Assembly: GCF_000143415.4 (NCBI RefSeq)
Contig: NW_003314400.1
Coordinates: 124,001 to 188,000 of the forward strand
DNA length: 64,000 bases
Source of the DNA: Selaginella moellendorffii
Taxonomy: Eukaryota > Plantae > Lycopodiophyta
Direction: 5' to 3'
This document shows, piece by piece, positions 1-63,925 of the stretch. Numbering within the stretch: the first letter of the stretch is position 1; every line of letters starts with the position of its first letter. Under the pieces are notes generated by a model. That model did no database searches and had not been told where the DNA came from. It worked only from the letters and a program-made list of their open reading frames with translations. A program made the position numbers and the translations under genes.

Positions 1-442
1 AAGGTGCTGTCAATTGAGCAAATGCAATAAGGAACATGGAGTTAAGAGATTCAAAACTTGCATATTGCGAGCACTTGCTTGCACTCTTCTGAGAGCTATT
101 GGTGTTGCTTTTGGTAGACCTATTTTGGAGTGGAGTGAAGTGCCTAAAAATCCCTTTCCTCTGCCTCCCCTCCCTGAGAGTGAGTGGAATCTAATCAAGA
201 GAGTTTTAAACTATTTAAAAGACTTTTAAAGTACTTAAAGAATTATTGAAATTTTTTTGAGTGTAGATGAAGTTCTTTTTAAGGGTATTGGGACAATGAA
301 AATAGTGTCCAAAGAATACAGAAGGCGCTATCGATTGAGCAAACATGGTAAGGAACATAGAGTTAAGAGATTCAAGACTCACATATTGCGAGCACTTGCT
401 TGTGCTCTTCTAAAAGCTATTGGTGCTGCTTTTGGTAGACCT

Positions 443-3400
443 TTGGCAAGTCAGAGGAACAAATCCTCTAGTTGAAGTTACTAACTTTAAAAGGGGTGGC
501 TTATAGGGCCAAGCATGGAAGAGTCTATGCATGATCACAGATTTGTCAGGTGAAAGGACTTAGTAGTGCGGAGGAACTACATTCTTAAGCTGTGATTTAT
601 AGCGCGCTTTAAGTATAAATTAGTTTACTGGTGTAGGGAGTCACGCCAGGCATCCTGTGTAATGCCGTCCGTAGATGCATATACGGAGGTTGGGTTCAAG
701 TCCTGACCCTCTAGTGCTTAGGTTCGAGTCTCAACTCACTAGGGCGTAATGATGATTTGGAATATGAGGACACTCATTTTTCAGTGGTCATAGACTCTTA
801 GTAAGGAGACTGGCTTGGGCACACCGCCAAGCGGGGGATGCCCCGGAGTCGTGATGCATGGTTAAATTGCTAAGTGTGAAAACTTAACATATCTAACTTA
901 AACACTTTGGTGCAATTGATACCAAGGACGTGGTGAATGAGATGGGGACACCCAATCTTAGTTGTTATGGACCCTTGGCTAGAAGGGTTAGCTTGGGCAT
1001 ACCACCAAATGTGGGGGATGCCCCCGGGGTCATGGTCAACAACTTAAAGGTGTAAGCAATTCGAGAGATGATCCGTTGGGGTTCAAATACAGAAGGAAAG
1101 GGCCTATAAACAAGAGTGCACCCTCTTTTCCAATCGGTTAAGGGTCTTGGGATATTTGGGATTAAGCGTCCTTGGGTTTGAATAGTACTGGGCTGGGTGA
1201 CCTCTTGGGAAGTCCAAATTCAGGAGTTTACATTTGGTATCAGAGGGGTCTCAGGTTTGACTCTGTTGGTTGGCTAGGGGAATCATACCATATGTTAATT
1301 GACATCTGGTAGGTCCAGTTTGCTCCCACTGGGCTTGACGACTCGAGGGGTAGGGTCTCAAGAGAGTGGGGCTCTCGGGAGAGCTGCGGCTCCTAGCTTC
1401 CGTTCATAAGGGCATGAACTTACAAGGAAGCGTGGTGAATTGTAAGCAACCAAAGGGAACAACTCGAGAGATGATCCGTTGGGGTTCAAATATAAAGGGA
1501 AAGGGCCCATAAACAAGAGTGCACCCCTTTTTCCAATCGGTTAAGGGTCTTGGGATATTTGGGGTTAAGTGTCCTTGGGTTAATGTTAATGGTGTGGCTT
1601 GGTTAAGGGTTGGGTGACCTAATGTTAATGTTAATGGTGTGGCTTGGTTAAGGTGACCAAGTGGGAAGAACATTTAAGGGCAATGTGATGGCATAGTGAG
1701 TCCAAAGAAAGTAGTCTTTATAAGAGACCCATAGGAGGGTTACAAAGTTGGGCTATGGATGGGGTCTATAGCAGAAAATGCTAAAAAGACCTACTAGGGG
1801 TGAGCACCTTTTGGATTTGGCAAAGTGGAGTTTTTGCCATGGAACCAAAAGAATACCTCAAGGATGAAGGTAGTGATCTTATGTTACTTAGAACAACAAT
1901 TAATGGATAGGAGCAAAAAACTAGTGGCTAAGAAAAGAGCCATGGGAATCATGGGATAAAACCCAAGTGGCAAAGTTAAGCCAAGAACACTAATATGGTA
2001 AATGCTAACAGATTGTGGGAAGGCAATGTGTTTCCAAGGATGGATTCCCAATTGTTCCAATTTGGCGAAGGTGGAAGCTCCAAGGGAGGGAGCAATAAGG
2101 TAACCAAATGATAGGGCCGTGAACAACCCTAACACAAATTATGATAACTGGAATTTAGTGCCAAAGGTGGCACAAAGTAGAAAAAAGGATGATAGTGCCA
2201 TCAAGTAGAGAACTTCCTAGGATAGGGAAGTGGAGTTGCACAAAATGTGCAATGCAAGGTGTCGGAAACACTTAGGAAATTAACTCCGAGAAGTCAAAAT
2301 TAAAAGTTCCAAAGTGCAAAGGTTATATCAATGGAAACTGAGACTACTCGAGAATGATAGTGGGATTGAGATAGAAAAGGTGTCTCTAACAAGTTTAGTG
2401 AAAACTAAACTAATAAAAGAAAAGAACCACCACAAGTGATCAAATGAGTCTCTAAGTTGAAGAGACTATGCTCCTTACTTTTGGCATCAAACCGTTGACA
2501 AATATTGACTAAGTGCTAAGGATGGAGAAGGTAATACATGCTAGTATTACTTTATGAAATAGTTTGTCATTCAATAAGGACATCGAACTTTGTATGGGTG
2601 GTGGAGTTGTGAGACACAAAATCCCTAGGCCCCAAAGGGGAGCCAAAACGGTGCCACGTGGTAGTGGCGGAGGCAAAAGCTAAATGAGCGTAACACATTT
2701 GGACTAAAAGCTCTGACTCGAAAAGTTGAGAGTGGGAGTGGAACTCCCAACGAAACGAGCACGAAGAAAGCATTAAGTGAGTCTCTAAAAAAGGGACATA
2801 AGAGGACTAGCATATGACACATGGAAGTGTTCGAGATGGAGTCCGAGATGGAATCAAGACCGAGATTGAGACCAAGACAGAGTCTGAGTCCGAAACCGAG
2901 ACCGAGTCTGAGTCCAAGTCCAAGTCTAAGTCCAAATACTAATACAAACTGTTGGGTGAAAGCCCAAAGAGATCGTCCCCCAAGGGGGGGGGGGGTAAGG
3001 GGGGGGGGGTAAGGGGGGGGGGGCAAGTGGCTATAGGGGCTTCCAAAAGTATAGTAGGGAGAGTATAAGGGTTGGAACCTAGTGGAGTCAATTTGGCCAA
3101 GAAAGGCTAGTTTGGCCCAGGAAAACTATACCCAGGTGTTGGGTGATGAGTTGACCACTGGGAAGTCCAAGATTAGAGTGAATACAGACCAACAAGCGGG
3201 GTAGCTTGGTGAAGTGTTCAAGAGCCGGCTCTAGTTCCCCTAGGAGATCGAATGGTTAATGCTCCCAGTTCAAGGGTAGGTGGCACTACCTGCTTGGATA
3301 CCTGGCATGGCTCAATGGAACCTCGCTCTAAGCCCATGGCTAGAGCACCCAAAGGCAAAAGGTGGGGAGAGTACCCACGAGGCTCACGAAGGGCCACGGT

Positions 3401-3772
3401 GTTCCGAAATGTTGTCCTAGAATCTCGAATGGTGGAAAGGAAGAAGAGCAATCCTCTGGTGTAGTGACCAAGGATGCGGTCATATGACAAGGAGGTCTTG
3501 GAGAACAAAGGGACCTAATGGTCAAGCTTGTAAGCCTTGATCTAGTGGCAGTGTTAGCGAACACAACCATGGACAGAAAGGGACTTGGTGGGGACCGAAA
3601 AAGGGATATTGAGGAAGGCTATTCCCCATGCCTGTAGGCATCTTAAGGATGCTAAGGGGTGGATCTAAGATGATCACTCATGGACGGATGGCCCAATTTT
3701 TTAGAGACAGGACTATGATATAGGTGGTGTGGTTAAATGACTAATGTAGAATGGAAAAATTAGTCAGTGACA
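443..3772 (+). mobile_element. Older, 5'-truncated copy of the non-autonomous LTR element (internal region 443-2607, 3' LTR 2608-3772)
   Basis: 443-1050 aligns to ~9781-10388 and ~1590-2607 aligns to ~10530-11592. PPT ATGGGTGGTGGAGT is followed by TGTGAGACAC at 2608. The LTR ends ...TTAGTCAGTGACA at 3772 and is shorter and diverged relative to the 1.7-kb LTRs. Confidence 0.85.
1051..1581 (+). mobile_element. Cassandra-type TRIM, 3'-truncated, nested in the older LTR element
   Basis: LTR1 1051-1232 (TGTAAGC...TTTACA) contains the 5S-like TTAAGCGTCCTTGGGTTTGAATAGTACTGGGCTGGGTGACCTCTTGGGAAGTCC. PBS TGGTATCAGAG at 1235-1245. Internal region ~210 bp. LTR2 starts at 1441 (TGTAAGCAACC) and breaks off near 1581. 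Confidence 0.88.
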
Positions 3773-5155
3773 GCCAAGTATGCTATCACGGGAGAGGGCA
3801 GCAATGAGTGCAGCAGCCACGCTAGGTATGCTATCGCAGGAGAAGGTAGTAGCAGCAGCAACATCGGCAGCAATAGCTGCAACAGCTGCCGGAGCAGTAG
3901 CAGCAGTAGTAGCAGTAGCCTTCATTAGAGGTCACAGGTTCGATGCTTTCATGAGAAGGAATTACCAAAACTACGCAACCCTAAGATTAACAGCCGCCCT
4001 CTTTCTTTATTGTTTAGGGTTTTTTAGTTGTCTTGGTTGTTATGACTTATTCCAAAGAATACAAAAGGCATTATCAATTGAGTAGATGCGGTAAGGAGCA
4101 TAGAGTTAAGAGATTCAAGACTCGCATACTATGAGCACTTCCTTGCGCTGCTCATGCTGCTTGCGTTCTTCTAAGAGCTATTGGTGTTGCTTTCGGTAGA
4201 CCTATTTTGGAGTGGAGCAAAGTGCCTAAAAATCCCTTTCCTCTGCCTCCCCTATCTGAGAGTGAGCAAAATCTAATTAAGAGAGTTTTAAACTACATAA
4301 AGAACTTTTAAACTACTTAAAGAACGATCGAAATTTTTCTAAGTGTAGATGAAGTTGTTTTCGAGGGTATTGGGACAATGAAAATAGTGTCCCTTTTCAA
4401 AGTGGAGAGACAGTGATATACCCATTAGAGAGGATTGATGGGGAAAGATTTGAAAAATTACTTCAAGAGTTGAAATCTGGAGATCTGTTTGCTTCGGGAT
4501 TTCCTACCCATGATGGTGAGCCTCTCATCTATCGAATGTTGCTGGAACATGGCCGCCACCTAATCTTTGTCCAAATAAGAACATTGCAACTATATAGCTT
4601 CATTTTGGTTTCTGACACATATGTTTCCGTATGTGGTGATCAATTGACCAGATTGATAAATAAACTCCTCAATGAATAGTGTGGGAATAATGATTTTCAA
4701 AAGTTAGAATACTATTTAGGAAATGGTGGCAGGAAAGTAGATATTCTTTAGTGAGTGCAAGCGAGGCAGCAGTAGCAACCAGCGCAGCAGCATCAACAAT
4801 AGCAGCCGCACAGTTGGCAAAGTAGTAGCAGTAGCAGCAGTAGTAGTAGCCGGCACAGCAGCCACGCCAGGTATGCTATTGTGGGAGAGGGCACCAGCAG
4901 CCACAGTAAATGGCAGAGCAGGAGCTGCAACAACCAAGGAAGCAGCCGATGCAGCAGCCATGCCAGGTATGCTGTCGCAGGAGAGGGCAACAACAATAGT
5001 AGCATCAGCAGTAGCTGCCGCAGCAGGAGCAGCAGTAGCAACAACCCTCGTTAGAGGTTGTGGGTTCGATGCTTGCATGAGAAAGAATTACCGAAACCAC
5101 ACATCCCTAAGATCAACAGCCACCATTCAAGTGCATTGGACTAGGGGTAAGTAAT

Positions 5156-5378
5156 GAAGAGCACTCCACAAACAAGAGACGGGTCAAGGAGTTGGAGGCT
5201 ACGGCCACAATTCGTGAGAAAGAGGTAGAAACGTGAAGAGCTCATTCACTCACTTTCGTGACTCGGGAAAATCTTGCAGGTATTTATGCTGAACACGAAG
5301 CTAGCTCAAGCCGAGAGTATGACTTACGACATTGTGAGGGATTTACTAGAAGTCAAGCACAACATTGCAAGCTTCGCA
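5156..5378 (+). pseudogene. Captured two-exon fragment of a kinesin-12 (POK-like) C-terminal coiled-coil region
   Basis: Exon EEHSTNKRRVKELEATATIREKE, GT..AG intron 5225-5279, exon VFMLNTKLAQAESMTYDIVRDLLEVKHNIASFA, then GT. Resembles the remembered POK1/2 tail motif EIFMLNARLAAAESMTHDVIRDLLGVK. Confidence 0.65.
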
Positions 5379-5784
5379 GTAAGGATTTTTTCTTTATTGT
5401 TTAGGGTTTTTTAGTGTTTTAGGTTGTTATGGCTTATTCCAAAGAATACAGAAGGCGCTATTGATTAAGCAAATGTGGTAAGGAACATAGAGTTAAAAAA
5501 TTCAAGACTCGCATACTGTAGGCACTTGCTCGCGTTGCTCGCACTCTTTTAAGAGCTATTGGTGCTACTTTCCTTAGACCTATTTTGGAGTGGAGCGAAG
5601 TGCCTAAAAATCCCTTTCCTCTACCTCCCTTCCTTGAGAGCGAGCGGAATATAATTGAGAGAATTTTAAAGTACATAAAAAACTTTTAAACTACTTAAAG
5701 AATGGTCAAAAATTTTCTAAATGTAGATGAAGTTGTTTTTAGTTGTATTAGGAGAATGAAAATAGTGTCCCTTTTCAAAGTAGA

Positions 5785-7481
5785 TGTGAGACACAAAATC
5801 CCTAGGCCCCAAAGTGGAGCCGGAAGGGCGCCACATGGTAGTGGCCGAAGCGAGAGCCAAACGAGCGTAACACGTTTGGACCAAAAGCTCCGACTTGAAA
5901 AGTCAAGAGCGGGAGTGGAACTCCCAATGAAGTGCTTGAGGAACGAGCACGAAGCGAGCAAAAGGCGAGGCTCCAAAAAGGGACCCAAAAGGACCAACAC
6001 ATGACATGTGGGAGTGTCCGAGATGGACCCGAGTTGGAGTCCGAAGTGGAGTCCGAGATGGACCCGAGATGGAGTCCGAAGTGGAGTCCGAGGTGGACCC
6101 GAGATGGACCCGAGTTGGAGTCCGAAGTGGAGTCCGAGATGGACCCGAGATGGAGTCCGAGATGGAGTCCGAGATGGAGTCCGAGGTGGACCCAAGATGG
6201 ACCCGAAATGGAGTCCGAGATGGAGTCCGAGATGGACCCGAGATGGAGTCCAAGATGGAGTCCGAGATGGACCCGAGATGGACCCGAGATGGAGTCCGAG
6301 ATGGAGTCCGAGATGGAGTCCGAGATGGAGTCCGAAGTCGAGACCGAGACCGGGACCGAGACCGAGACCGAGACCGAGATCGGGACCGAGACCGAGGCCG
6401 AGGCCGAGGCCGAGACCGAGCCCGAGCCCGAGTCCGAGTCCGAATCCGAGTCCGAGTCCGAGTCCGAGTCCGAGTCCGGAGCCTGAGAGGGTGAAAGCCC
6501 AAAGCGTTCGTCTCCCAGACCCTGGGGGGTTTGGTGAGCTCCAAAAGTATAGTAGGGGGAGGACTGCAGTGGAGCCAGTTTGGCCAGGAAAGGCCAGTTT
6601 GGCCCAGGAAGGCCGGACCCAGTGTTGGGTGATGAGCTGCCCACTGGGAAGTCCAAGACTAGAGTGAACACAGACCGACAAGCGGGGTAGCTTGGTGAAG
6701 TGTTCAAGAGCCGGCTCTAGTTCCCCCGGGAGATCGACTGGCCGATGCTCCCAGTCCAAGTGTGGGTGGCACTACCTACTTGGATACCTAGTGTGGCTCA
6801 ATGGAACCCGCTCTAAGCCCATGGCTAGAGCACCCAAGGGCAGAAGGCGAGGAGAGTACCCAGGTGGCTCGCGTAAGGCCACGGTGTTCCGAAATGTTGT
6901 CCCAAAGGCCCAGACTGTGGAAAGGAAGAGGAGCAGTCCTCTGGGGTAGTGACCAAGGACACAGTCGTGTGGTGAGGAAGTCCCAGAGGACCGTGGGACT
7001 TAGTGGTCGGGCCTGTGGGTCTCGATCCAGTGGCAGTGTTGGCCAACATGGCCAGGGGCAGAAAGGGACTTAGTGGGGACTGACAGAGGGATATTAGGGA
7101 AGGCTATTCCCCTTGTCGGTGGGCATCCTAAGGATGCTAAGGAGTGGATCTGAGATGACCACTCACGGAAGGTTTGCCTAGTCTTGGAGAGCCAAGACGG
7201 TGATGCAAGTGGTATTGGACTACCAGTGTGGCAAAGGTGATTGGGCATGGCCTTAGCGTAACGGGCTGCTATGTCGGTGGTACCTTTGAGTGTCGGTCAT
7301 GGGATCGGACACGTGGAGCACTTGGACCAAGTGCAAATGTTGAGTGGCATGGATGCCATTCTCGGGGCTAGCAAGTCCCAAGTCCTGGATTGGACTTATG
7401 GAGGTTGTGAATGAGACTCCTCCAAGTGGTCAGAGGTGTGGTTAAGTGACTAAAGTAGAATGGAAAATTTAGTCGCTTACA
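5785..7481 (+). repeat. 5' LTR (1697 bp) with internal 11/12-bp and 6-bp tandem repeat array (~6015-6480)
   Basis: Direct repeat of 11593-13307. Array units GAGATGGAGTCC / GAGATGGACCC, then (GAGACC)n, (GAGGCC)n, (GAGCCC)n, (GAGTCC)n. Confidence 0.95.
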
Positions 7482-7484
7482 ATT

Positions 7485-7496
7485 TGGTATCGGAGC
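7485..7496 (+). promoter_or_regulatory. Primer-binding site for tRNA-iMet
   Basis: TGGTATCGGAGC lies 3 nt after the LTR end; one mismatch (G:U-compatible) to the canonical TGGTATCAGAGC. Confidence 0.9.
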
Positions 7497-9602
7497 TGTT
7501 CCTTAGTCCGACTTTTATTGGTGCTCAAGTATATCACCACTGGTGTTGGCATCGGAAGGTCCGAGGAGTGGGCCTATCCTTGAGGAGTAGCAAGTCGGGA
7601 AGACATGGCTCTCCATTATAGTTCATGTGTGAACTTGTAGACAAGGTGGTGGATAGAAAAGGGCCAATAATGGAACGACTTTGGGATCTTGGGAACAGTA
7701 TATGGTTTTCCTCAAAGAGTTGAGGATGTGATCCAGATGAGCGTTTGACTTAGCAAACTGGCTAATGTAGTTGTGGTAAACAACTACAGTTGGGATCATG
7801 GGAAAGATAAAGACTCCAAACCAATAAAGGAGTCACAAGATTTTCCTCATATAGTTGAGGTTGGTGCTCATGAATGTGAGACCAGAAGTAATGACCGTGG
7901 GTTGTAAAATACGGAAGAGGACTTGAGTCCTTGAAAAGGTAGCCGGGGCTACCTCTAATAAATGTTGGAACAACCCAAGGAGTTGGGGGTGTATTAAGTG
8001 GATGAGTTGGTGTTCTCATCACATGGACAATTAGTCCTAAGGGGCAAAGGTTGCCCCCAGAGAACAAAATCAAGTGTCGGAGTAACACTTGTGAAAATAG
8101 TCCTTTTGAGTAGGACAGGAATGCAAGAAGTGTATGCCAGTGAGCTAGTGCCTCACAAGTAAGCCCTTACGGGTCTGTGGATTAACCAAGTCCAAAATTG
8201 CTGGATGACTCAAGTAGAGTCAACGGATGGTCCTAAAAGGACTGATGGAAGCATTTGGACTAAGGTGTGGTATACCCCACAAAGGATGGGGGGGGATCAT
8301 AGGATCCAAGGATGAGAACAGAGGGTATCTCATCGATGGCAAAATGTGCCATGCTAAAGTTATGGGAAAGGTGTTCCCAGAAGAAAACAACTTTGACATA
8401 AAGTTGTGTGTGACTTCTATGGTGCAGTGCTAACAGATGGTTGGCATGAGAAAGAGCGGTGTTGGTCTTGGCAAAGACTTAGACACGAAGGGGAAATGTC
8501 ATAGAGGTAGGCTCGTGGAGCCAATGGTGTGGAGACACCAAATGTGCCAAGGTGTGATACCTTGAGGCTATGTTGGTGGGTTCATGAGAACCCCTTGCCA
8601 AAGGAATCCCAATGGAAATGGGAATAGCATAGCCTAAGTTGCAGAGCATGCAGTTGGAGTGTGGTGACCCAGATAATGATGGAGGTGTGAAAGCACCAAG
8701 CAATGAGTTGTAGGACTTGACAACTATGAGGCAACTAAGCAAGAGGTGCAAAATAACTGGTTAAACGGGTAGAAGGTAGCTACCCAAGACTTCTTAATAG
8801 TATAGGGAAGTTGGATATACCCTTACGGGGGATAAGTTGCTTGTGTTGCGATATAGTAAGTCAATGTCATAAAAGGAAATACTCATTGTCAAGAAAGCCA
8901 TCATTGGGACACCCGAACACTCTAGAACACCAAAAGGTGGTGTTTGATGTCGCGAGGGCAATGGATAAAGCCCAAGGGACTAAGTCCCTAGCGAATGATG
9001 GATAGAAGGTGCTATCCAAATGTCCAAGGTTGCGGAGACAGGAGAGGACTGTCTACCCGAGTTGGACAAAGCCAAAAATGGAATTTTGGCAAGGCTAGTG
9101 ATGGGCATGTAAAGGCCCATAAGCAACAATGTAATCCCAGTGTGTGGGATTATAAGGTGAGCATACCCGGATTGAGGAACCACTCCCTCGGCTATTGAGT
9201 AGGTTCATCCCTAAGAATACTTGCTAAAGCATGATAGAAAGTGCAAAGCTATCCTCCTGGTCTGGAGGAGAATGACCAAAGGAAAGGTGTGAAGCCAAAA
9301 AGCAAGAAGTAAGGGGATAGAACCGAACCGTAGGAATCAAAGGGCATAACCAAGGTTGGTTATGCCAGCTGGGAGTGGAGAATCAAGTGGGGGCTCGAGG
9401 GTGTTGCCGCTAGCAACCGTGATGCCATGGAGAGTCTAAAATATGGAATTGTTCATGTTAGACTATGTGGCATTTGGAAGGCTTGCAAAAAGGGAGGCCT
9501 TAGCAAGCTGAGGGACAGAGTTCCTTCAAGGTTCCCAAAGACGATTCTGGGTAGCTTAGTACCTAGAAAGGCCAAGTGTAAATGGTTCATGGAACGCGCG
9601 AA

Positions 9603-9629
9603 ATCAGAGTGGCGCAGCAGAAGCGTGGT
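9603..9629 (+). other. Sense-orientation 5' fragment of tRNA-iMet inside the element
   Basis: ATCAGAGTGGCGCAGCAGAAGCGTGGT versus the plant tRNA-iMet 5' end ATCAGAGTGGCGCAGCGGAAGCGTGGT recalled from memory (26/27 identical). Confidence 0.8.
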
Positions 9630-11592
9630 CTTGAAGCTTGCCATGAAGCAAGGCTATCAAGGTTAGGGAAGTAGTTCCCGAGTGTTCAAAGAGAGGGCTT
9701 TGAACGAAAGTCGATGGTCAAGGACTTTCACGCTTATGCAGGAACCATGTTACAATGGTCGGAGGACTTGCCAAGCGAGATTGGCACGTCGGGGGAACAA
9801 ATACCCTAGTTGAAGATGATAACTTCAAAAAGGGTGGGCCATGGGGCCGAGCATGGAGGAGTCCATGCATGATCACAGACATGTCAAGTGAGAGGACTTG
9901 GCAGTGTGGAGGAACTAGGTTCCTAAACTGTGATCTGTAGCGCGCTTTAAAAATGAGTTGGTGCACCGGCGTGGGGAGTCACGCCAGGCATCTTGTGTGA
10001 TGCCGTCCGTAGATGCATATACGGAGGTTGGGTTCGAGTCCCGACCCTCTAGTGCTTGGGTTCGAGTCCCAAATCACTAGGGCGTGGTGATGGTTTGGAA
10101 TATGAGGACACTCATATTTCGGTGGTCATGGACTCTCAGTGGGGAGACTGGTTTGGGCACACCGCCAAGCGAGGGATGCCTCGGAGTCGTGATGCACGGT
10201 TAGATTGCTTAGTGTGAAATCTCAGCATATCTAACTTGAACGCTTTGGTGTAAGTGGCACCAAGGTCGTGGTGAGTGAGATGGGGACACCTAATCTCAGT
10301 TGCTATGAACCCTTGGCCGTAAGGGCTGGCTTGGGTGCACCGCCAAGTGTGGGGGATGCCCCCGGGGTTATAGTCAACAACTTGGAGGTCTAGAAGACCA
10401 AGTACCTCTTGGCAACTCTGTTAAGGTGCCAAGGTGAGATCACTAGGTGATCTTATGGCCAGATAAGGACAAGGTCCTTGGTTGGCTAAGGAATGAAGTT
10501 CCTGGTTCAAAATGTTGAAATTGAACTGTTTAAGGTGGTGTGGCTTGGTCGTGATGACCAAGTGGGAAGAGCACCTAAGGGAAATAAACTATGTCCGTGC
10601 GATGGCATAGTGAGTCCGAGGAAAGTAGTCTCTATAAAAGACCCATGGGAGGGTCACAAAGTTGGGCCGTGGATAGAGCCCATAGCAGAAGATGCTAAAG
10701 AGACGTACTAGGGGTGAACATCCTCCGGACTTGGCAAAGAAGAGTCTTTGCTATGGAACCGAAACAATACCTCAAGGAAGGAGGTAGAGATTCGATGTTG
10801 CTTGGTGCAACAATCAACGGATAGGAGCAAAAGATGAGTGGCCAAGATAGGGCCGTGGAATCCCTTGGAAGGAATCCAAGTGACAAAGTTAGGCGAGGAA
10901 CACTAATGTGTTGGACGCTAACAAGTTGCGGGAAAGGAAGTGTGTTTCCAAGGAGGGATTCCGAAATGCTCCAATTTGGCGAAAGTGGAAGCTCCAAGGG
11001 AGGGAGCGGTAAGGTAGCCAAATGATAGGGCCATGAACAGCCCTAGCACAAAGTATGATAAATGGAACTTAGTGCCCAAGGTGGCACGAAATAGAAGAGA
11101 GGATGATGGTGCCCTCGAGTAGAGAACTTCCTAGGATGGGAAGTGGAGTTGCACAAAAGGTGCAAGGCAAGGTGTCGGAGACACCTAGGAAATTGACTCC
11201 AAGAAGTCAAAATTCAAAGTTCCAAAGTGCAAAGGTTATATTGGTGGAAATTGAGACTACTCGAGAAGGAGTAGTGGGATTGACTTAGAGAAGGGTCTTT
11301 AAGAGGTTTAGCGAGAACTAAACCAATAAAAGGAGAGAACCACTATATGTGGTCCAATCAGTCTCTAAGATGGAGAGACTACCCTCCTTAGAGGATATGC
11401 AAAAGGCATGGTGAGCCTTCAATGTCCAACCATTGACGAATATGGAGAAGGCATGGTGAGCCTTCAATGTCACACCATTGACAAATATTGGCTACGCGCC
11501 AAGGATGGAAATGGTAACACATGCGGGTGTTACTTCATAAAATGGTTCACCGTTCGATGAGGACATCGAACTTCGTCTATGGGTGGTGGAGT

Positions 11593-13307
11593 TGTGAGAC
11601 ACAAAATCCCTAGGCCCCAAAGTGGAGCCGGAAGGGCGCCACATGGTAGTGGCCGAAGCGAGAGCCAAACGAGCGTAACACGTTTGGACCAAAAGCTCCG
11701 ACTTGAAAAGTCAAGAGCAGGAGTGGAACTCCCAATGAAGTGCTTAAGGAACGAGCACGAAGCGAGCAAAAGGCGAGGCTCCAAAAAGGGACCCAAAAGG
11801 ACCAACACATGACACGTGGGAGTGTCCGAGATGGACCCGAGTTGGAGTCCGAAGTGGAGTCCGAGATGGACCCGAGATGGAGTCCGAGATGGAGTCCGAA
11901 GTGGAGTCCGAGATGGACCCGAGATGGACCCGAGTTGGAGTCCGAAGTGGAGTCCGAGATGGACCCGAGATGGAGTCCGAGATGGAGTCCGAGATGGAGT
12001 CCGAGGTGGACCCAAGATGGACCCGAAATGGAGTCCGAGATGGAGTCCGAGATGGACCCGAGATGGAGTCCAAGATGGAGTCCGAGATGGACCCGAGATG
12101 GACCCGAGATGGAGTCCGAGATGGAGTCCGAAGTCGAGACCGAGACCGGGACCGAGACCGAGACCGAGACCGAGATCGGGACCGAGACCGAGGCCGAGGC
12201 TGAGGCCGAGACCGAGCCCGAGCCCGAGTCCGAGTCCGAATCCGAGTCCGAGTCCGAGTCCGAGTCCGAATCCGAGTCCGAGTCCGAGTCCGAGTCCGAG
12301 TCCGGAGCCTGAGAGGGTGAAAGCCCAAAGCATTCGTCTCCCAGACCCTGGGGGGTTTGGTGAGCTCCAAAAGTATAGTAGGGGGAGGACTGCAGTGGAG
12401 CCAGTTTGGCCAGGAAAGGCCAGTTTGGCCCAGGAAGGCCGGACCCAGTGTTGGGTGATGAGCTGCCCACTGGGAAGTCCAAGACTAGAGTGAACACAGA
12501 CCGACAAGCGGGGTAGCTTGGTGAAGTGTTCAAGAGCCGGCTCTAGTTCCCCCGGGAGATCGACTGGCCGATGCTCCCAGTCCAAGTGTGGGTGGCACTA
12601 CCTACTTGGATACCTGGTGTGGCTCAATGGAACCCGCTCTAAGCCCATGGCTAGAGCACCCAAGGGCAGAAGGCGAGGAGAGTACCCAGGTGGCTCGCGT
12701 AAGGCCACGGTGTTCCGAAATGTTGTCCCAAAGGCCCAGACTGTGGAAAGGAAGAGGAGCAGTCCTCTGGGGTAGTGACCAAGGACACAGTCGTGTGGTG
12801 AGGAAGTCCCAGAGGACCGTGGGACTTAGTGGTCGGGCCTGTGGGTCTCGATCCAGTGGCAGTGTTGGCCAACATGGCCAGGGGCAGAAAGGGACTTAGT
12901 GGGGACTGACAGAGGGATATTAGGGAAGGCTATTCCCCTTGTCGGTGGGCATCCTAAGGATGCTAAGGAGTGGATCTGAGATGACCACTCACGGAAGGTT
13001 TGCCTAGTCTTGGAGAGCTAAGACGGTGATGCAAGTGGTATTGGACTACCAGTGTGGCAAAGGTGATTGGGCATGGCCTTAGCGTAACGGGCTGCTATGT
13101 CGGTGGTACCTTTGAGTGTCGGTCATGGGATCGGACACGTGGAGCACTTGGACCAAGTGCAAATGTTGAGTGGCATGGATGCCATTCTCGGGGCTAGCAA
13201 GTCCCAAGTCCTGGATTGGACTTATGGAGGTTGTGAATGAGACTCCTCCAAGTGGTCAGAGGTGTGGTTAAGTGACTAAAGTAGAATGGAAAATTTAGTC
13301 GCTTACA
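11593..13307 (+). repeat. 3' LTR (1715 bp)
   Basis: Direct repeat of 5785-7481. It is 18 bp longer, entirely within the tandem array (offset 5808 before the array, 5826 after). Confidence 0.95.
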
Positions 13308-15874
13308 GTAGAGAGACAGTGATATACCCATTAGAGAGGATTGATGGGGAGAGATTTAAAAAGTTATTTCAAGAGTTGAAATCTGGAGATCTGTTTGCTT
13401 GAAGATTTCTTGCCTACAACAATGAGTCTCTCATCCATCGAATGTTGCTAGAACATGGCCGCCACCTAATCTTTGTCCAAACAAGAACATTGCAACTATA
13501 CAACTTCATTCTGGTTTCTGACAAATATGCTTCTGTATATGGTGATCAATTGACCAGATTGAAAAATGGACTCCCTGATGAATAGTGTGGGAACAACGAT
13601 TTTCAAAAGTTAGAACACTATTTAGGAAATGGTGGCAGGAAAGTTGAAACTCTTTAACAAGTGCAAGTAGAGCAGCAGCAACAGCCAGCACAGCAATGGC
13701 AATAGCAGCATCGGCAGCAGTAGCCACACAGCTGGCAGAGCAAGAGCAGTAGTAGTTAGCATAGCAACCACGCTACGTATGCTATCACAGGAGAGGGTAG
13801 TAGTAGTCGCAACAACTAGTGGAGCAAGAGGAGCAACAGCTGACGCAGCAGCCACACCAGGTATGCTATCGTAGGAGAGGGCAACAGTAGCATCAGCATC
13901 AGCAGCAGCTGCCAAAGTAGGAGCAATAGCAACCCTCGCTAGAGGTTGCAAGTTCGATGCTTACATGAGAAAGAATTACTGAAACCATACAACCCTAAGG
14001 TCAACAGCTGCCCTCTTTCTTTATTGTTTAGGGTTTTTCAATGTTCTTGGTTGTTAGGGCTTATTCTAAAGAATACAGAAGGTGCTGTCGATTGAGCAAA
14101 CGCAGTAAAGAACATAGAGTTAAGAGATTCATAACTCGCATACTGCGAGCACTTGCTCATGCTCTTCTAAGAGCTATTGGTGCTTCTTTTGGTAGACCTA
14201 TTTTGGAGTGGAGTGAAATGCCTAAAAATCCCTTTCCTCTGCCTCCCCTCCCTGAGAACGAGCGAAATCTAATCAAAAGAGTTTTAAACTATTTAAAAGA
14301 CTTTTAAAGTATTTAAAAAATGATTGAAATTTTTTTGAGTGTAGATGAAGTTCTTATCGAGGGTATTGGGATAATGAAAATAATGTCCCTTTTCAAAGTG
14401 GAGAGACAGTGATATACCTATCAGAGAGGATTGATGGAGAAAGATTTAAAAAGTTACTTCAAGAGTTGAAATCTGGAGATTTATTTACTTTGGGATTTCC
14501 TACCCACAATAGTGAGCCTCTCATCTATCGAATATTGCTGGAATATGGCCGCCACCTAATCTTTGTCTAAATAAGAACATTGCAACTATACAGCTTTATT
14601 TTGGTTTCTGACACATATGCTTCCATACATGGTGATCAATTGACTAAATTGATAAATAGACTCCTCAATGAACAGTGTGGGAATAACGATTTTAAAAAGT
14701 TAGAATACTATTTACGAAATGGTGGCAGGAAAGTAGATATTCTTTAGTGAGTGCAAGCGAGGCAGCAGCAGCCAGCACAACAGTGGCAGCAACAGCATCG
14801 GCAGGAGCAGTTGCACGGCTGGCAAAGCAGGAGCAACAACAGTAGTAGCAGCCGGCACGGCAGCCACGCTAGGTATGCTATTCCACAGCAAATGGCAAAG
14901 CAGTAGCAGCAGCAGCAGCAGCTGAGATAGCAGCCAGTGCAGTAGCCATACCAAATATGCTATTGCAGTATAAAGAAGTGCACAAGTGTGACTCCAATTA
15001 TCAACAACAAGCTGATGCTCTATGATTGTTTTTTCTTCGTTCATGAGTTCCAAGGCTGACATAGTTGCTACTAGTGTGCTGCCAGTTGATAAGATGACAG
15101 ATTACAAGGGTCTGATTCAGGTTATTGTGAATCAAATCCCACGGAGGCAGCTGGAAGAGACTTACGGCTTGCTCTGAAGCCAAAGCCATATTAGGATCAA
15201 AATAGGCCTCCTACTGCTGGTGAGCTTCTCAAGTCATACGCTCAGTCATGCGGCTATGTAGCTTTGAGAGGTCTTCCAGATGAGACACAATCTGCTCTCA
15301 AGGACTACCTCAATGGTAAGCTTTTAAACTACCATACTCCACCAGACGACAACACCATAAGTGACGATGAAAGCAACGACAATGATGAGAAGCTGGTGGT
15401 GTGACGTTGACGATCTCTCAGGACAAGAGGACGAAGAAGACGAAGGAGAAGAAGACGAAGAAGGATCAAAAACAGCTACAGCTACTGGTGAATCCAATCT
15501 CAAAGCTCGACTGGATGTCCAAAAGCTTTTAACGCACATGTAAGAGGTCTGGTACACGTGGCAAAATTACGCGATGCCACGTGGAGGTACTAAGCTTGTG
15601 CACGTGGCAAAATGCAATGCTGCCAAGTCGGAAGTACTTCTAGGCTAAGAAAGCCAAAACTTCTATTGATTGATCCGCATTGTAACCCGCTGGGCTTTTC
15701 TCTGATTCTCGCTTTTGATCCTGATGTCACCCTATTCTACAGCAACCACCACAAATGGATGAGTATAAATGTGTAAACATACCCTCGTCTTGTCGCAATA
15801 TCATTTGGAGTGGATTATTAAGGACTTATTAAGTGGATCTGTCTCTCCATAGCGTTCATACTGGAGCATATTCG

Positions 15875-16027
15875 GTATCGCCGAATAAAGGGATCTTCCG
15901 TTCACGCAGCTCCTTCATAGCAATCTGCAAAGAACTCCGTCACTCCACACAAATTCCTTTTCAGAGTTTCGATACCTCGAGTGGATCTGTCTCGCCCTCG
16001 AGTTCCACCATCACTGGAGTGTTAATA
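15875..16027 (-). pseudogene. NRPB6: RNA polymerase subunit RPB6 (NRPB6) 3' exons, inverted fragment
   Basis: Minus-strand exons INTPVMVELEGETDPLE (15976-16027) and IAMKELRERKIP.. (up to 15924) with a GT/AG intron match the RPB6 C-terminal motif. Confidence 0.85.
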
Positions 16028-36585: not shown

Positions 36586-37290
36586 ATGGTGTCTCGCCCT
36601 AGCACTCTGCTCATCCTCTTGTGTGTGGGCTTCCTTCTCTTCCCGATTTTCCAGAGTGTCAATGGAGCTCTAGAACTCACAGCCATAGACTGCGCACTCA
36701 ACGAGCAACGCTCCTGTGCGTTCCCAACAGGTTTGGTTCTCTGGCAATGCTGGGCAAGGATTAGCTACTGGGGAGNNNNNNNNNNNNNNNNNNNNNNNNN
36801 NNNNNNNNNNNNNNNNNNNNNNNNNNNNNNNNNNNNNNNNNNNNNNNNNNNNNNNNNNNNNNNNNNNNNNNNNNNNNNNNNNNNNNNNNNNNNNNNNNNN
36901 NNNNNNNNNNNNNNNNNNNNNNNNNNNNNNNNNNNNNNNNNNNNNNNNNNNNNNNNNNNNNNNNNNNNNNNNNNNNNNNNNNNNNNNNNNNNNNNNNNNN
37001 NNNNNNNNNNNNNNNNNNNNNNNNNNNNNNNNNNNNNNNNNNNNNNNNNNNNNNNNNNNNNNNNNNNNNNNNNNNNNNNNNNNNNNNNNNNNNNNNNNNN
37101 NNNNNNNNCTTCCCCTCCGCCACCATCACCGCCTCCTCCTCCTTCTCCACCGCCACCATCACCCCCGCCACCGTCGCCTCCGCCGCCATCTCCACCTCCT
37201 CCTCCTTCTCCACCGCCACCATCACCCCCGCCACCGTCGCCTCCGCCGCCATCTCCACCGCCTCCGCCTTCATCGCATTCCCGTCGTGTC
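36586..37290 (+). CDS. Putative secreted extensin-like / proline-rich protein (interrupted by assembly gap)
   Basis: Signal peptide MVSRPSTLLILLCVGFLLFPIFQSVNG before the gap and SPPPP repeats after it. Continuity across the N-run cannot be verified. Confidence 0.5.
36776..37108. other. Assembly gap (333 N)
   Basis: N run adjacent to SPPPP-coding repeats. Confidence 1.
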
Positions 37291-43514: not shown

Positions 43515-44685
43515 CTTACCCGGAAGGGATTCCAAATCTTCGGCCCAACATCGTTCGGCTTGCCGAAACACACGCCCTAGTAACCGGGAGAAATCCCAGC
43601 ATCACAAACTTGCTCTGCCGGAGAAGATGTTTCCAGTGCAAGAGGAACCACATTGTCCTCCACCGGAGGAGGAGCTTCCATTTTATCTTCCAGAGGTTCT
43701 TGCACCATAGCAGCGGCAGAGCTGCTGTTCTTGATGTGTGTGGAAATCAGCAAGTTCTTCATGGCAGCAGCGTGCTGCTGCTTCATCGATGACGAGAGCC
43801 CGATCAAAAAGTACTGCTTCTCCTTGGACGGCGGCGACATACACCCCTGCTTGATCAGCGTGGAAACGCCGTGCCCCAGCTCGAATGCGTTGCAGATCAA
43901 AGGCGTGTTGCTCACTGGCTGCCTGGCTAGCTGCCGCAGAGAGTTGAGAAATCTGCCCCCTCTCATCTTGAGGCGCTCGGCGAAGATCAGTACTCCCAGA
44001 CGATCTGGCAAGAATCACTCACCAGCAGCCGAGCGGCATCGCCAGCGCCATCGCGGCCTCGCTCGCCATAGCCTGGCCGTTACGCGGTACAGAAAGATTG
44101 GTATACGTGGCAGCTATTTAATTTCTAAAATTTAAGAGAATGTTCGTTAGGGTTAGCGCCAGAGGATGAAGTTTGGATGAAATGCAGAGGATTTTGGAGG
44201 ATCGAGGCCTCAAGCTGCGCCCAGCAAAGAGAAATGCCAGTGGCCTTTTGTTTTTCTTCATTGCTCTCAGACAGAATGTTATTTTCTGGAAGACGATGAA
44301 GGAGGCATGATCTCGTTCGATCTTTGCTGGTTTCCAGCACGGATTCCGAGCTCGAGAAAATGGTTTTGGAAAGGCTGGATGAATATGAAAGCAATGTAGG
44401 CAACTTCGCCGCTCCGTGCGAGAGGAACGAACGCAGATAAATCTTTGTCTGAATGGGCAAAGGATAGAGGAGTCAAAAGCAACATTGGCATAGCTGGTGA
44501 GTCTGGGTATATTTTTCTATGACGATCTTAAAAGCTTTGTGACAAAACAGATTTTGAAGGATATGGTCGAGGAGGGGCTGCAGCCTGCAGCGTGCGATTT
44601 AAAAGCTGGAGATCTCGTCCTTGAGATTCCCAGCGAGATTATTAGCTCTGAAACTGTCACGCTGGAGTCGGATTTCTGTTCGATT
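43515..44685 (+). repeat. Local segmental duplication, copy 1 (copy 2 = 62788-63925); includes a SET-domain (Rubisco-LSMT-like) gene fragment
   Basis: Near-identical ORF-track peptides in both copies. Plus-strand LSEWAKDRGVKSNI, intron, GYGRG..AACDLKAGDLVLEIPSEII with frameshifts. Confidence 0.85.
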
Positions 44686-51744: not shown

Positions 51745-52680
51745 AACGGCACTCACAAAAGCACCTATTCTAGCAGTGCCAAGAGTTTCATGTGCTTGTG
51801 GATGCATTGCACATCGCCATTGCCAAGGCACAACTTGACAGAAAGGACAGACCTATTTACTACGCCAGCAAACGCTTGTCCCCTGCAAAATTGAATTACA
51901 CAACTACAGAAAACGTGCCTGTAAGCTCCTGAGTTTGGACTTCCCAGGAGGTCACCCAACCCAGTACTATTCAAACCCAAGGATGCTTAACTCCAACTAT
52001 CCCAAGACCCTTAACCGATTGGAAAAGGGGGTGCACTCTTGTTCATGGGCCCTTTCCCTCTATATTTGAACCCCTATGGATCGTCTCTCGAATCGTTCCC
52101 TTTGGTTGCTTACAATCCACCACACTTCCCTGCAAGTTCACGCCCTCGTGAACGGAAGCTGAGAGCCGCAGCTCTCCCGAGAGCCCTGCTCTCTTGACAC
52201 CCTACCCCTCGGGTCAAGCCCAGCGGGAGCAAACTGGACCAGCCAGATGTCAATCAACATGTGGTGCGATTCCCCTAAGCCAACCAACAGAGTCGGACCT
52301 GAGACCGCTCCGATACCAAATGTAAGCTCCTGAGTTTGGACTTCCCAAGAGGTCACCCAACCCAGTACTATTCAAACCCAAGGACGCTTAACTCCAACTA
52401 TCCCAAGACCCTTAACCCATTGGAAAAGGGGGTGCACTCTTGTTCATGGGCCCTTTCCCTCTATATTTGAACCCCTATGGATCGTCTCTCGAATCGTTCC
52501 CTTTGGTTGCTTACAGTGCCTTGCGATGATATACGCCGTGAAGAAATTTCGACACTATCTTCCAGCTAATCGCATCAAATTTGTTGTTGGTCATCAAGCA
52601 CTCTTACATCTAAATCCAATAGGAAGGTTGGCCAGATGGTTCTTACTCCTTACAGGAATTTGATTTCAAAATAATACACT
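51745..52680 (+). mobile_element. Degenerate Ty3/gypsy RNase H fragment interrupted by the Cassandra TRIM
   Basis: KAPILAVP..RPIYYASKRLSPAKLNYTTTE | LAMIYAVKKFRHYL..HQAL..GRLARW..QEFDF. Confidence 0.8.
51920..52515 (-). mobile_element. Full-length Cassandra-type TRIM (596 bp) with 5S-rRNA-like domain in both LTRs
   Basis: LTRs 51920-52114 and 52321-52515 (195 bp, 3 mismatches seen), termini TGTAAGC/GCTTACA. TSD GTGCC at 51915-51919 and 52516-52520. PBS TGGTATCGGAGC at 52318-52307. LTR segment GTTAAGCATCCTTGGGTTTGAATAGTACTGGGTTGGGTGACCTCCTGGGAAGTCC matches the 5S internal control region. Confidence 0.95.
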
Positions 52681-52882
52681 GACTGAGACGCCTATACTTA
52701 CCCTACAAGACTTACAACATCCCCTAGGTAAATACACTATGGTTTTGGGCTTTCAGCCTTGGGCGCCTGCCACGCTGTCTTTTCCCTGTTGCCACGTATT
52801 CTTGTCTCCTTTGCCACGCGGGTTTCGACGTGGCAAAAGATTAACGGGACGCGATGCTTAGGGTTCCAGAGTCTGAGCCAAA

Positions 52883-55800
52883 ATGACCGCTGTTCTGTCT
52901 GACTCAGAAGACAACCAGCAGACTCCACCAAGAGCACAAGCGAACAAGGCGAGCACCTCCATCTGAGCGCTCCACGGGTGGGAATACAAGTGGAAGAAGA
53001 GCGCCGATCAAGGCTGGTTCATACAGAAGGGTTTGGGAGGAATCATCGAGGTACTGGCTAACAAGGTAGTTACCATAGATGGGCTGTTCCTTACCAACAT
53101 GATCATGGCGATGGACGAGCACAAGAAGGCGATCAGAGTCTACAGGAGGAACATCCGGCTTTCAGCGGAGTTCTTCAACCAGGTATTCGATTTTCCAGAA
53201 TTCCAGGGACACATGAAGAAGCCCAGCCGAACCATCCGACCAAGTGCGTATCGACATTTGTTCGAAGAAACAGTTGCGGGCAGAAGAAAGTGGAAGACCC
53301 ATCTCGCCAGAAGGAAGGACACCAAACGGGTGAAAGGCATCCAAGTCGGGGACTTTCCGGTTGCACACGCCAACAGGCTTCGACCCCTTACGGCTCTCAT
53401 CGGATGCAAGGAGGAGCCGAAGGCGATCCCGGCAAATGTAATGTGGGCCTATGCGAGAGCAGAGAACAGGCAATCGGTGAACTGGGGGGTGATCTTCCGG
53501 ATTTCATTTTTCCGGGTGATTGCCGCTCAGAAAAGTAGGATCCTGAGCCGTCAGGAAGGATTCACGTATCTAGCGAGGATAGCGGGGTACCTCGGGCTAA
53601 CATCAGGGTACAAGTGGAAGTTCCGACCCCTACATGAACTGCTGGAGTACTCGCTAAAGAAGCAGATGGACGACTTCATCAACGGGGTGAAGAACAACAC
53701 CGAAGGCTGGTACAAAACGCTACACTACACCAGTGATCAGGACTCGGACAGTTCGGCGGAGGAAGAAGAGCCGGAGGAAGACGGGGCCGATGTGGACCCC
53801 GAATCCCCGTCGATCCCACAGGTACCCAGAGGTATGCCAGATCAGCCGGTAGATGGTAACCCACCGCCACAGTATGGAGGCGGCGTACGAATTACCCATC
53901 GAGGAGTAACCGAAGTTGGCAGTTATGGCCAGCCAGTATACTCCGACTTTGGGACGACCCGGGCAGAACGCTAGTGTCAGCTGACGCATCAAGAAGGAGA
54001 AATGCCAGGGACGCAACCACGGCCCCCTTACCTAATTAGCGATAATAAAGCCTAGTTAGATTTAAGCATTATTGACCTAATCACTTCAGCTGAAAAGTGA
54101 CCGCTGTTCTGTCTGACTCAGAAGACAACTAGCAGACTCCACCAAGAGCACAGGCGAACAAGGCGAGCACCTCCATCCGAGCGCTCCACAGGCGGGAATA
54201 CAGGTGGAAGAAGAGCGCCGATCAAGGCTGGTTCATACAGAAGGGTTTGGGAGGAATCATCGAGCTACTGGCCAACAAGGCAGTTACCATAGATGGGCTG
54301 TTCCTCACCAACATGATCATGGTGATGGACGAGCACAAGAAGGCGATCAGAGTCTACAGGAGGAACATCCGGCTTTCGGCGGAGTTCTTCAACCAGGTAT
54401 TCGATTTACCAGAATTCCAGGGACACATGAAGAAGCCTAGCTGAACCATCCGACCAAGTGCGTATCGACATTTGTTCGAAGAAACAGTTGCGGGCAGAAG
54501 AAAGTGGAAGACCCATCTCACCAGAAGGAAGGACACCAAACGGGTGAAAAGCATCCAAGTCGGGGACTTTCCGGATGCACACGCCAACAGGCTTCGACCC
54601 CTTACGGCTCTCATCGGATGCAAGGAGGAGCCAAAGGCGATCCCAGCAAATGTAGTGTGGGCCTATGCAAGAGCAGAGAATAGGCAATCGGTGAACTGGG
54701 GGGTGATCTTGCGGATTTCATTTTTCCGGGTGATTGCCGCTCAGAAAAGCAGGATCCTGAGCCGTCAGGAAGGATTCACGTATCTAGCGAGGATAGCGGG
54801 GTACCTCGGGCTAACATCAGGGTACAAGTGGAAGTTCCGACCCCTGCATGAACTGCTGGAGTACTCGCTAAAGAAGCAGATGGACGACTTCATCAACGGG
54901 GTGAAGAACAACACCGAAGGCTGGTACAAAACGCTACACTACACCAGTGATCAGGACTCGGACAGTTTGGCAAACGAAGAAGAGCTGGAGCAGCAGAAAG
55001 ATGGGGCCGACGTGGACCCCGAATCCCCATCGATCCCACAGGTACCCAGAGGTATGCCAGATCAGCCGGTAGATGGTAACCCACCGCCACAGTATGGAGG
55101 CGGCGTACGAATTACCCATCGAGGAGTAACCGAAGTTGGCAGTTATGGCCAGCTAGTATACTCCGACTTTGGGACGACCCGGGCAGAACGCTAGTGTCAG
55201 CTAACCCATCAAGAAGGAGAAATGCCAGGGACGCAACCACGGCCCCCTTCCCTAATTAGCGATAATAAAGCCTAGTTAGATTTAAGCATTATTGACCTAA
55301 TCACTTCACCTGAAAAGTGACCGCCGTTCTGTCTGACTCAGCAGACAACCAGCAGACTCCACCAAGAGCACAGGCGAACAAGGCGAGCACCTCCATCCGA
55401 GCGCTCCACGGGCGGGAATACAGGTGGAAGAAGAGCGCCGATCAAGGCTAGTTCATACAGAAGGGTTTGGGAGGAATCATCGAGGTACTGGCAAACAAGG
55501 CAGTTACCATAGATGGGATGTTCCTCACCAACATGATCATGGCGATGGACGAGCACAAGAAGGCGATCAGAGTCTACAGGAGGAACATCCGGCTTTCGGC
55601 GGAGTTCTTCAACCAGGTATTCGATTTTCCCGAATTCCAGGGACACATGAAGAAGCCCAGCCGAACCATCCGACCAAGTGCGTATCGACATTTGTTCGAA
55701 GAAACAGCTGCGGGCAGAAGAAAGTGGAAGACCCATCTCGCTAGAAGGAAGGACACCAAACAGGTGAAAGGCATCCAAGTCGGGGACTTTCCGGATGCAC

Positions 55801-62787: not shown

Positions 62788-63925
62788 CTTACCCGGAAGG
62801 GATTCCAAATCTTCGGCCCAACATCGTTCGGCTTGCCGAAACACACGCCCTAGTAACCGGGAGAAATCCCAGCATCACAAACTTGCTCTTCCGGAGAAGA
62901 TGTTTCCAGTGCAAGAGGAACCACATTGTCCTCCACCGGAGGAGTTTCCATTTTATCTTCCAGAGGTTCTTGCACCATAGCAGCGGCAGAGCTGCTGTTC
63001 TTGATGTGTGTGGAAGTCAGCAAGTTCTTCATGGCAGCAGCGTGCTGCTGCTTCATCGACGACGAGAGCCCGATCAAAAAGTACTGCTTCTCCTTGGACG
63101 GCGGCGACATACACCCCTGCTTGATCGGCGTGGAAACGCCGTGCCCCAGATCGAATGCGTTGCGGATCAAAGGCGTGTTGCTCACTGGCTGCCTGGCTAG
63201 CTGCCGCAGAGAGTTGAGAAATCTGCCCCCTCTCATCTTGAGGCGCTCGGCGAAGATCAGTACTCCCAGACGATCTGGCAAGAATCACTCACCAGCAGCC
63301 GAGCGGCATCGCCAGCGCCATCGCGGCCTCGCTCGCCATAGCCTGGCCGTTACGCGGCACAGAAAGATTGGTCCAGGGGCGGCGAGTGTGTAGAGGATGA
63401 AGTTTGGATGAAATGCAGAGGATTTTGGAGGATCGAGGCCTCAAGCTGCGCCCAGCAAAGAGAAATGCCAGTGGCCTTTTGTTTTTCTTCATTGCTCTCA
63501 GACAGAATGTTATTTTCTGGAAGACGATGAAAGAGGCATGATCTCGTTCGATCTTTGCTGGTTTCCAGCACGGATTCCGAGCTCGAGAAAATGGTTTTGG
63601 AAAGGCTGGATGAATTTGGCACTGATGAAAGCAATGTAGGCAACTTCGCCGCTCCGTGCGAGAGGAACGAACGCAGAGAAATCTTTGTCTGAATGGGCAA
63701 AGGATAGAGGAGTCAAAAGCAACATTGGCATAGCTGGTGAGTCTGGGTATATTTTTCTATGACGATCTTAAAAGCTTTGTGACAAAACAGATTTTGAAGG
63801 ATATGGTAGAGGAGGGGCTGCAGCCTGCAGCGTGCGATTTAAAAGCTGGAGATCTCGTCCTTGAGATTCCCAGCGAGATTATTATCTCTGAAACTGTCAC
63901 GCTGGAGTCGGATTTCTGTTCGATT
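62788..63925 (+). repeat. Local segmental duplication, copy 2
   Basis: Direct repeat of 43515-44685 with small indels. Confidence 0.85.

Follow-up and report, generated by a model that had tools for sequence, protein, structure and literature searches.

Near-chance compensation between an old and a young copy of a LARD-like Selaginella retrotransposon, and a duplicated module that points to a conserved fold

Retrotransposons with long terminal repeats (LTRs) that code for nothing must be copied by the proteins of another element, and it is poorly understood how they bring this about. Among the closest described systems, large retrotransposon derivatives (LARDs) and terminal-repeat retrotransposons in miniature (TRIMs) are non-autonomous elements which, in the passages of PMC7215508 that bear on them, specify RNA secondary structures that are well conserved, with LARDs described there from Triticeae grasses. 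The mouse elements VL30 and ETn, as portrayed in parts of PMC4859993, are likewise LTR elements that lack proteins and need RNA features for packaging by the Gag of an autonomous partner. Here, we analyse a 64,000-nucleotide stretch of the Selaginella moellendorffii nuclear genome (contig NW_003314400.1, positions 124,001 to 188,000; hereafter the window, in whose own numbering all coordinates are given), which contains two copies of a non-coding LTR element. The segment at 443-2607 comes from an old copy of a LARD-like non-autonomous LTR retrotransposon, of whose non-coding interior it forms the 3′ two-fifths, and self-comparison plus end analysis of the window place an intact, younger element at 5785-13307. 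A preliminary description of the older copy had read double base changes in its stems as evidence that structure rather than sequence is conserved. We find that such changes occur at, or only marginally above, the level expected by chance, and that independent support for a fold that may be conserved comes from a module duplicated within both copies.

The likeness to LARDs is one of description: long LTRs, a primer-binding site (PBS), a polypurine tract and a multi-kilobase interior without gag or pol are the features that sections of PMC7215508 give for those elements and that recur here, and on this analogy the family would behave as a LARD-type non-autonomous LTR element. What would set it apart from them is an interior that forms, in the young copy, a near-continuous chain of ∼100 distinct short hairpins. 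Counting only perfect hairpins with a stem of at least 6 bp, we obtained 58 in the young interior as opposed to 6.2 in dinucleotide shuffles, an approximately tenfold excess that was absent from control regions of the window. Loops across the young interior are 71% purine and only 8% C. With VL30 and ETn, which are animal elements (PMC4859993), the family shares no sequence, and packaging by a helper would here be supposed by analogy.

The old copy has suffered considerably. It lacks anything corresponding to sequence 5′ of young-copy position 9781, it is split by the insertion of another element (see below), and substitutions between it and the young copy run strongly in one direction, with G>A 97 and C>T 60 times in the young-to-old sense but A>G 28 and T>C 19 times (157 GC-to-AT changes against 47 in reverse). 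In addition, the RNA folding z-score of its segment 443-1058 is −4.2, about half that of the young homologue (−8.6). Together, the truncation, the insertion, the GC-to-AT asymmetry and the halved z-score indicate that this copy is old. The substitution spectrum also justifies the caveat, raised in the preliminary description, that methylation-type transitions might mimic paired changes.

Focusing on local hairpins, we collected a non-overlapping set that is perfect in the young copy (stem of at least 5 bp, loop of 3 to 10 nt) and scored its pairs in the old one, which amounted to 42 young-defined hairpins with 233 scorable pairs in two aligned interior copies. While 188 pairs were unchanged, 42 had changed on one side and 3 on both sides with pairing kept; none had changed on both sides and lost pairing. 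As a null model, substitutions were placed independently with rates per base and per CG, CHG and CHH context. Simulation with the rates of the whole alignment predicts 5.3 ± 2.2 compensated pairs, and an analytic calculation from the stems' own rates predicts 2.97 (probability of at least 3, 0.57). When the 3′ partner was slid by 1 to 3 positions, 2 to 3 both-changed pairs resulted, equal to the true partner, and the same test in the LTR returned 2 compensated pairs for 2.6 expected. Of the 38 young hairpins with a gap-free alignment, 26 have at least one broken pair in the old copy. Between the two copies, compensation is thus at, or marginally above, chance level. This level follows from the decay itself: a transition separates the copies at about 15-22% of G and C sites, so that both members of a G:C pair are struck a few times per few hundred pairs, and a G:C pair hit by transition on both sides always becomes A:T. 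Hairpins defined in the old copy gave a different figure, 5 compensated pairs for 1.35 expected (P 0.012), which we dropped since perfect stems in a decayed copy retain chance double hits while single hits are discarded.

All sequences quoted in the preliminary description lie at the coordinates given there, and the three double changes it pointed out are real: young A10172:T10181 versus old G834:C843, young G11305:C11324 versus old A2392:T2411, and young C11518:G11529 versus old T2535:A2546. All three consist of transitions, however, and in two cases the old copy has gone from GC to AT on both sides, as chance transitions give; at the frequency observed they do not establish constraint. Three stems cited as kept while their loops changed do behave in this way, TTGCAC/GTGCAA and GTGCC/GGCAC each having no stem and one loop difference and AGTCTCT/AGAGACT no stem and two loop differences. 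A 'different hairpin' reported at 2368-2386 is present yet weak, with four Watson-Crick pairs and one G·T, and its young counterpart at 11284-11303 has a 7-pair stem including one G·T.

A more informative comparison lies within the interior itself, where two modules of ∼120 nt, A and B, are 66% identical to each other and are both present in both copies (Table 1); self-BLAST of the interior returned nothing besides this duplication. In a structure-blind MAFFT alignment of the four module sequences, the consensus fold has 34 pairs, arranged as a hairpin with a GACA loop and a 14-pair outer stem that encloses three hairpins. Nine of these pairs change on both sides, but 135 of the 136 pair cells remain paired. 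That is, 99.3% of cells are paired compared with 93.3 ± 1.4% in shuffles (reached in 0 of 500), and the 9 covarying pairs compare with 5.6 ± 1.3 in shuffles (2 of 500) and with 0 to 2 in slid controls. Folding young module A alone and mapping its pairs onto young module B, which avoids the bias of consensus folding, yielded 7 kept double changes for 2.75 expected (P 0.0036) and only 2 broken single changes for 8.1 expected (P 0.0008). The old pair of modules, treated in the same manner, showed 5 kept double changes for 2.0 expected (P 0.02). In positions 1-16000, a covariance model of the module found only its four training copies. Between A and B, then, we see what resembles the compensatory evolution of RNA stems, with Watson-Crick pairs exchanged for other Watson-Crick pairs and G·U intermediates; the swaps between old and young copy differ from this and from template-switch look-alikes (PMC8794818) in standing at chance under a transition-biased GC-to-AT decay. 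Judged from the sequences, modules A and B are independent support for a fold that is probably conserved, unlike the old-versus-young swaps.

The paralogous module also serves as an outgroup with which changes can be assigned to a branch. The young branch receives 12 module changes, whose spectrum is balanced, and the old branch 11, of which 10 are GC-to-AT. At paired sites, young-branch changes kept pairing in 9 of 9 cases, or in 6 of 6 when the structure was taken from the old copies only, although these numbers are small. Two double changes are polarised to the young lineage in this way, at 10172:10181, which the preliminary description had noted, and at the long-range pair 10308:10369, which had escaped it and is A:U in young module B but G:C at 970:1031 in the old copy and in module A. 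As changes derived in a replicating lineage, these two may represent true compensation.

The preliminary description had further proposed that substitutions are restricted to loops. By raw count, stems indeed carry fewer: with perfect hairpins defined in the young copy, 50 of 473 stem positions differ (10.6%), compared with 54 of 235 loop positions (23.0%; Fisher P 2.4e-5 against stems) and 165 of 890 linker positions (18.5%; P 9e-5), and simulation expects 80.6 stem differences. This deficit arises largely from the requirement for perfect pairing in one copy, which removes that copy's own lineage's stem changes. Accordingly defined core stems diverge by 6.6-8.5% when taken from the young copy and by 6.5-7.6% when taken from the old copy, and the two values sum to 13-16%, compared with ∼17% expected for the composition of stems. 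Broken down by class, GC-to-AT transitions, mainly decay of the dead copy, have a rate per G/C site of 0.154 in stems and 0.222 outside them, while AT-to-GC changes (0.023 versus 0.071) and transversions (0.013 versus 0.052), classes that belong mainly to the young lineage, are three to four times scarcer in stems. Outgroup polarisation, reciprocal divergences and per-class rates thus agree that the dead copy decays roughly alike in stems and loops. Polarising LTR differences with the old LTR, as a source of a neutral spectrum, was abandoned because sites were too few and the outgroup too noisy.

The account that we consider probable, if well short of certain, is that the fold is kept while the lineage replicates, that an inserted copy then erodes, and that the three noted swaps came about by chance. 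The family would be copied through a sense RNA, the interior of which would fold into short hairpins and small multi-branch modules. In the replicating lineage, changes that break pairs would be purged, so that stems would drift by way of G·U intermediates and, now and then, double changes, with loops and linkers free to vary. After insertion, a copy would decay neutrally and in stems and loops alike, mainly by C-to-T and G-to-A changes; here, the spectrum is observed and the neutrality is what we infer. Differences between old and young copy would accordingly be mixed, about half of them one-sided GC-to-AT changes in the dead copy and the rest on the young lineage, and the old copy would mainly be a record of erosion. 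On this account the earlier conclusion that structure is conserved rather than sequence is probably right for the family, but the evidence then offered from the old-versus-young comparison does not establish it.

Several observations weigh against this account. When the whole minimum free energy (MFE) structure of the young copy is used (495 pairs, G·U allowed), kept double changes number 16 for 11.4 (P 0.12) or 9.5 (P 0.03) expected, an excess that is suggestive only. Old-branch changes at paired module sites, few as they are, keep pairing in 5 of 6 cases, so that part of the old branch may have been under selection and the local-hairpin test may under-count compensation. The old copy also remains more stable than the young sequence subjected to random decay, at −181 versus −154 ± 11 and −220 versus −191 ± 12 kcal/mol, values to which the ascertainment caveat applies as well. 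The stem deficit reflects the young lineage, and with two sequences selection and ascertainment are inseparable in it; likewise, the two interior copies in the window are too few to demonstrate either selection or neutrality on the young lineage. A neutral history proved feasible in forward simulation provided that 74-94% of the ancestor was covered by perfect hairpins, which is extreme yet possible, and we consequently dropped the argument that an ancestor could not hold so many hairpins. Finally, we infer transcription, RNA folding and any role of the fold from the DNA.

Some of these points favour the reading of the preliminary description, in which double changes are compensation driven by selection and the pairwise comparison already demonstrates structural constraint. 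The whole-MFE excess and the nominal excess in old-defined hairpins speak for it, as do the two double changes derived on the young, replicating lineage and the fact that 14 of the 15 changes polarised at paired sites of the modules keep pairing. Nevertheless, we regard this reading as unlikely. The unbiased, young-defined test finds no more compensated pairs than the null or the slid controls, the old-defined excess is biased by its perfect-stem requirement, and one-sided changes outnumber compensated ones 42 to 3. Those single changes show no preference for pairing either: 14 of the 42 lead to G·U, 22 to A·C and 6 are transversions, and across the whole MFE structure 46 kept pairing and 62 broke it, as expected.

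The main rival invokes no selection at all. Perfect inverted repeats would once have been made by mutation, for instance through template switching or snap-back synthesis in the course of reverse transcription or replication, both copies would since have decayed from a hairpin-saturated ancestor, and the apparent compensations would be due to chance or, in a variant that we hold to be just as improbable as the rest of the proposal, to single template-switch events in which one arm was re-copied from its partner. Template switching is known from PMC8794818 both to generate stems and to 'repair' them within a single event, the arms of a palindrome present the same methylation context on opposite strands and thereby favour symmetric hits, and both the reciprocal stem divergences, which add up to about the total divergence, and the forward simulation accommodate a neutral model. 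Against it stand modules A and B, in which a third of the sites differ while all but one of the pair cells are kept and 9 pairs covary. G·U pairs occupy 24 of the 136 module cells (18%), two such pairs being G·U in all four sequences, and the sense strand folds better, with a module consensus of −30.6 kcal/mol and 34 pairs as opposed to −19.6 kcal/mol and 24 pairs for the antisense. The purine-rich loops are likewise strand-asymmetric, 0 indels in 616 aligned bases argue against recent inverted duplications, and stems of at least 7 bp with one G·U number 19 on the sense and 10 on the antisense strand where chance gives ∼3.5 each, a weak point. Module covariation and strand asymmetry argue against an origin by mutation alone, without being decisive for the rest of the interior. 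That the inverted repeats act in DNA, as cruciforms or protein-binding palindromes, would agree with perfect Watson-Crick hairpins scoring, in bulk, about equally on the two strands (z −8.6 sense, −9.9 antisense) but is very improbable, given modules that fold far better in the sense and whose G·U cells would be A·C in DNA or on the other strand, hairpins that all differ in sequence and so offer no common binding site, and a strand-specific loop composition.

Turning to the anatomy of the elements, the young one has a 5-bp target-site duplication, GTAGA, on either side (5780-5784 and 13308-13312), and its empty insertion site is visible in the neighbouring repeat unit at 4390-4425. Its two LTRs have TG..CA ends and are ∼97% alike, with 56 substitutions and 18 indel columns. 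A PBS-like sequence, TGGTATCGGAGC, follows the 5′ LTR at 7485-7496 and is presumably one mismatch away from the usual initiator-Met tRNA PBS; the polypurine tract GGGTGGTGGAG precedes both 3′ LTRs (young 11581-11592, old 2596-2606). No gag or pol coding capacity was found in the young interior, where the longest open reading frame (ORF) has 108 aa; ten element ORFs gave no exact match in the protein collection, and a homology search with the 108-aa ORF returned none either. Rfam searches at gathering and E-value thresholds found no match inside the interior of either copy, ARAGORN called no tRNA in the interior, and the 27-mer best conserved between the copies had no match in one metagenome scan. 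The LTRs contain long arrays of 6- and 12-nt units (GAGTCC / GAGACC / GAGATGGAGTCC) at 5971-6489, 11791-12315 and 2839-2945, which give rise on both strands to spurious ORFs of 200-350 aa and account for most of the LTR-LTR indels. Within the young interior, a 44-nt tandem duplication with two hairpins per unit occupies 11403-11481, the old copy having a single, partly deleted unit at 2478-2506. Also in the young interior, 9603-9629 on the sense strand may resemble the 5′ end of plant initiator-Met tRNA (ATCAGAGTGGCGCAGC...). Two motifs like a tRNA T-arm or an RNA polymerase III B-box, GGTTCGAGTCC in 5-7-bp stems with 7-nt loops, are seen at 10026-10072 (young) and 688-734 (old); they sit in the best-conserved stretch between the copies, with 4-5 differences per 60 nt at 9991-10080, and neither ARAGORN nor Rfam called a tRNA there.

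The insertion that splits the old copy is itself reminiscent of the Cassandra TRIMs in that it has, at 1142-1229, a stretch like 5S rRNA and that a full copy elsewhere in the window matches it. The Rfam score of this stretch (35.7 bits, E 2.6e-4) is below the gathering score of 38, and the TRIM is an insertion into the old element, not the hairpin element itself. Its PBS, TTTGGTATCAGAG, lies near 1233, and the full copy at 51920-52515 is inverted.

Both the old and the young element were inserted, according to self-comparison, into a tandem repeat with units of ∼1.1-1.4 kb. Elsewhere, the window contains one tRNA, further PPR arrays at 19.5-21 kb and 37.7-38.2 kb in addition to the ORFs listed in Table 1, and an assembly gap at 36776-37108 that adjoins a SPPPP-type repeat. 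More inverted repeats are found around 40.2-42.8 kb and 50.9-51.1 kb; with the 99% identical direct repeat, they suggest other young repeats or elements.

Table 1. Positions of the element copies, their modules and other features of the window
Feature	Position	Strand	Remarks
Old copy, internal segment 1	443-1058	+	vs young 9781-10396: 84.4% identity, 0 gaps, 78 transitions, 18 transversions
Old module A	750-866	+	covariance model R1, 115 bits
Old module B, ancient duplicate of A	928-1047	+	covariance model R1, 126 bits
TRIM insertion, Cassandra-like, splits old copy	1059-1634	+	∼90% inverted match to 51920-52515
Old copy, internal segment 2, ends in polypurine tract	1635-2607	+	vs young 10536-11592: 82.4% identity, 126 transitions, 47 transversions
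Old copy, 3′ LTR, own 3′ end missing	2608-3728	+	∼77-81% identity to 11593-13039
Young element, 5′ LTR, TG..CA	5785-7481	+	end analysis
Young element, non-coding internal domain, 4.1 kb	7482-11592	+	
Young module A	10088-10204	+	contains pair 10172:10181
Young module B	10266-10385	+	contains long-range compensated pair 10308:10369
Young element, 3′ LTR	11593-13307	+	end analysis
Tandem repeat, unit ∼1.1-1.4 kb, units 75-91% alike	1-442, 3810-5784, 13308-14968		
LRR receptor-like kinase ORF, intron-less, 1080 aa	26287-29526	−	head to head with PPR/E-motif ORF
PPR/E-motif ORF, 596 aa	29848-31635	+	head to head with LRR receptor-like kinase ORF
Direct repeat, 99% identical	44385-44684 and 63625-63924		19 kb between copies
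Tandem array, 5 copies of 1220-bp unit, 94-98% identical	52880-58053		A-rich strand

What is added here is a quantitative old-versus-young test, the argument on ascertainment, and a duplicated module in both copies of the window. Two cautions follow for similar work. In plant repeats that are methylated and transition-biased, chance produces G:C-to-A:T 'compensations' between two copies near the observed rate, and stems that are defined by perfect pairing in one copy look conserved from that definition alone. For the biology of non-coding LTR elements, a family that retained its entire interior as RNA hairpins would lend itself well to the study of selection on fold alone. Purine loops are known Gag contacts in retroviruses, as a passage of PMC8096270 has it, and given the purine-rich loops seen here it is attractive to imagine the fold as a multivalent platform for packaging or dimerisation by the Gag of a helper. 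Going further, the element might be purely an 'RNA-shape' parasite, in which the ∼100 hairpins of the 4-kb interior, their loops rich in purine and poor in C, out-compete the RNA of its autonomous partner for Gag/nucleocapsid packaging, an idea that we put forward tentatively and hold to be doubtful. If true, it would mean that selection acts on the fold alone, with stems turning over by compensation as they do between modules A and B, and that the fold's neutral erosion can be read from old dead copies such as 443-2607.

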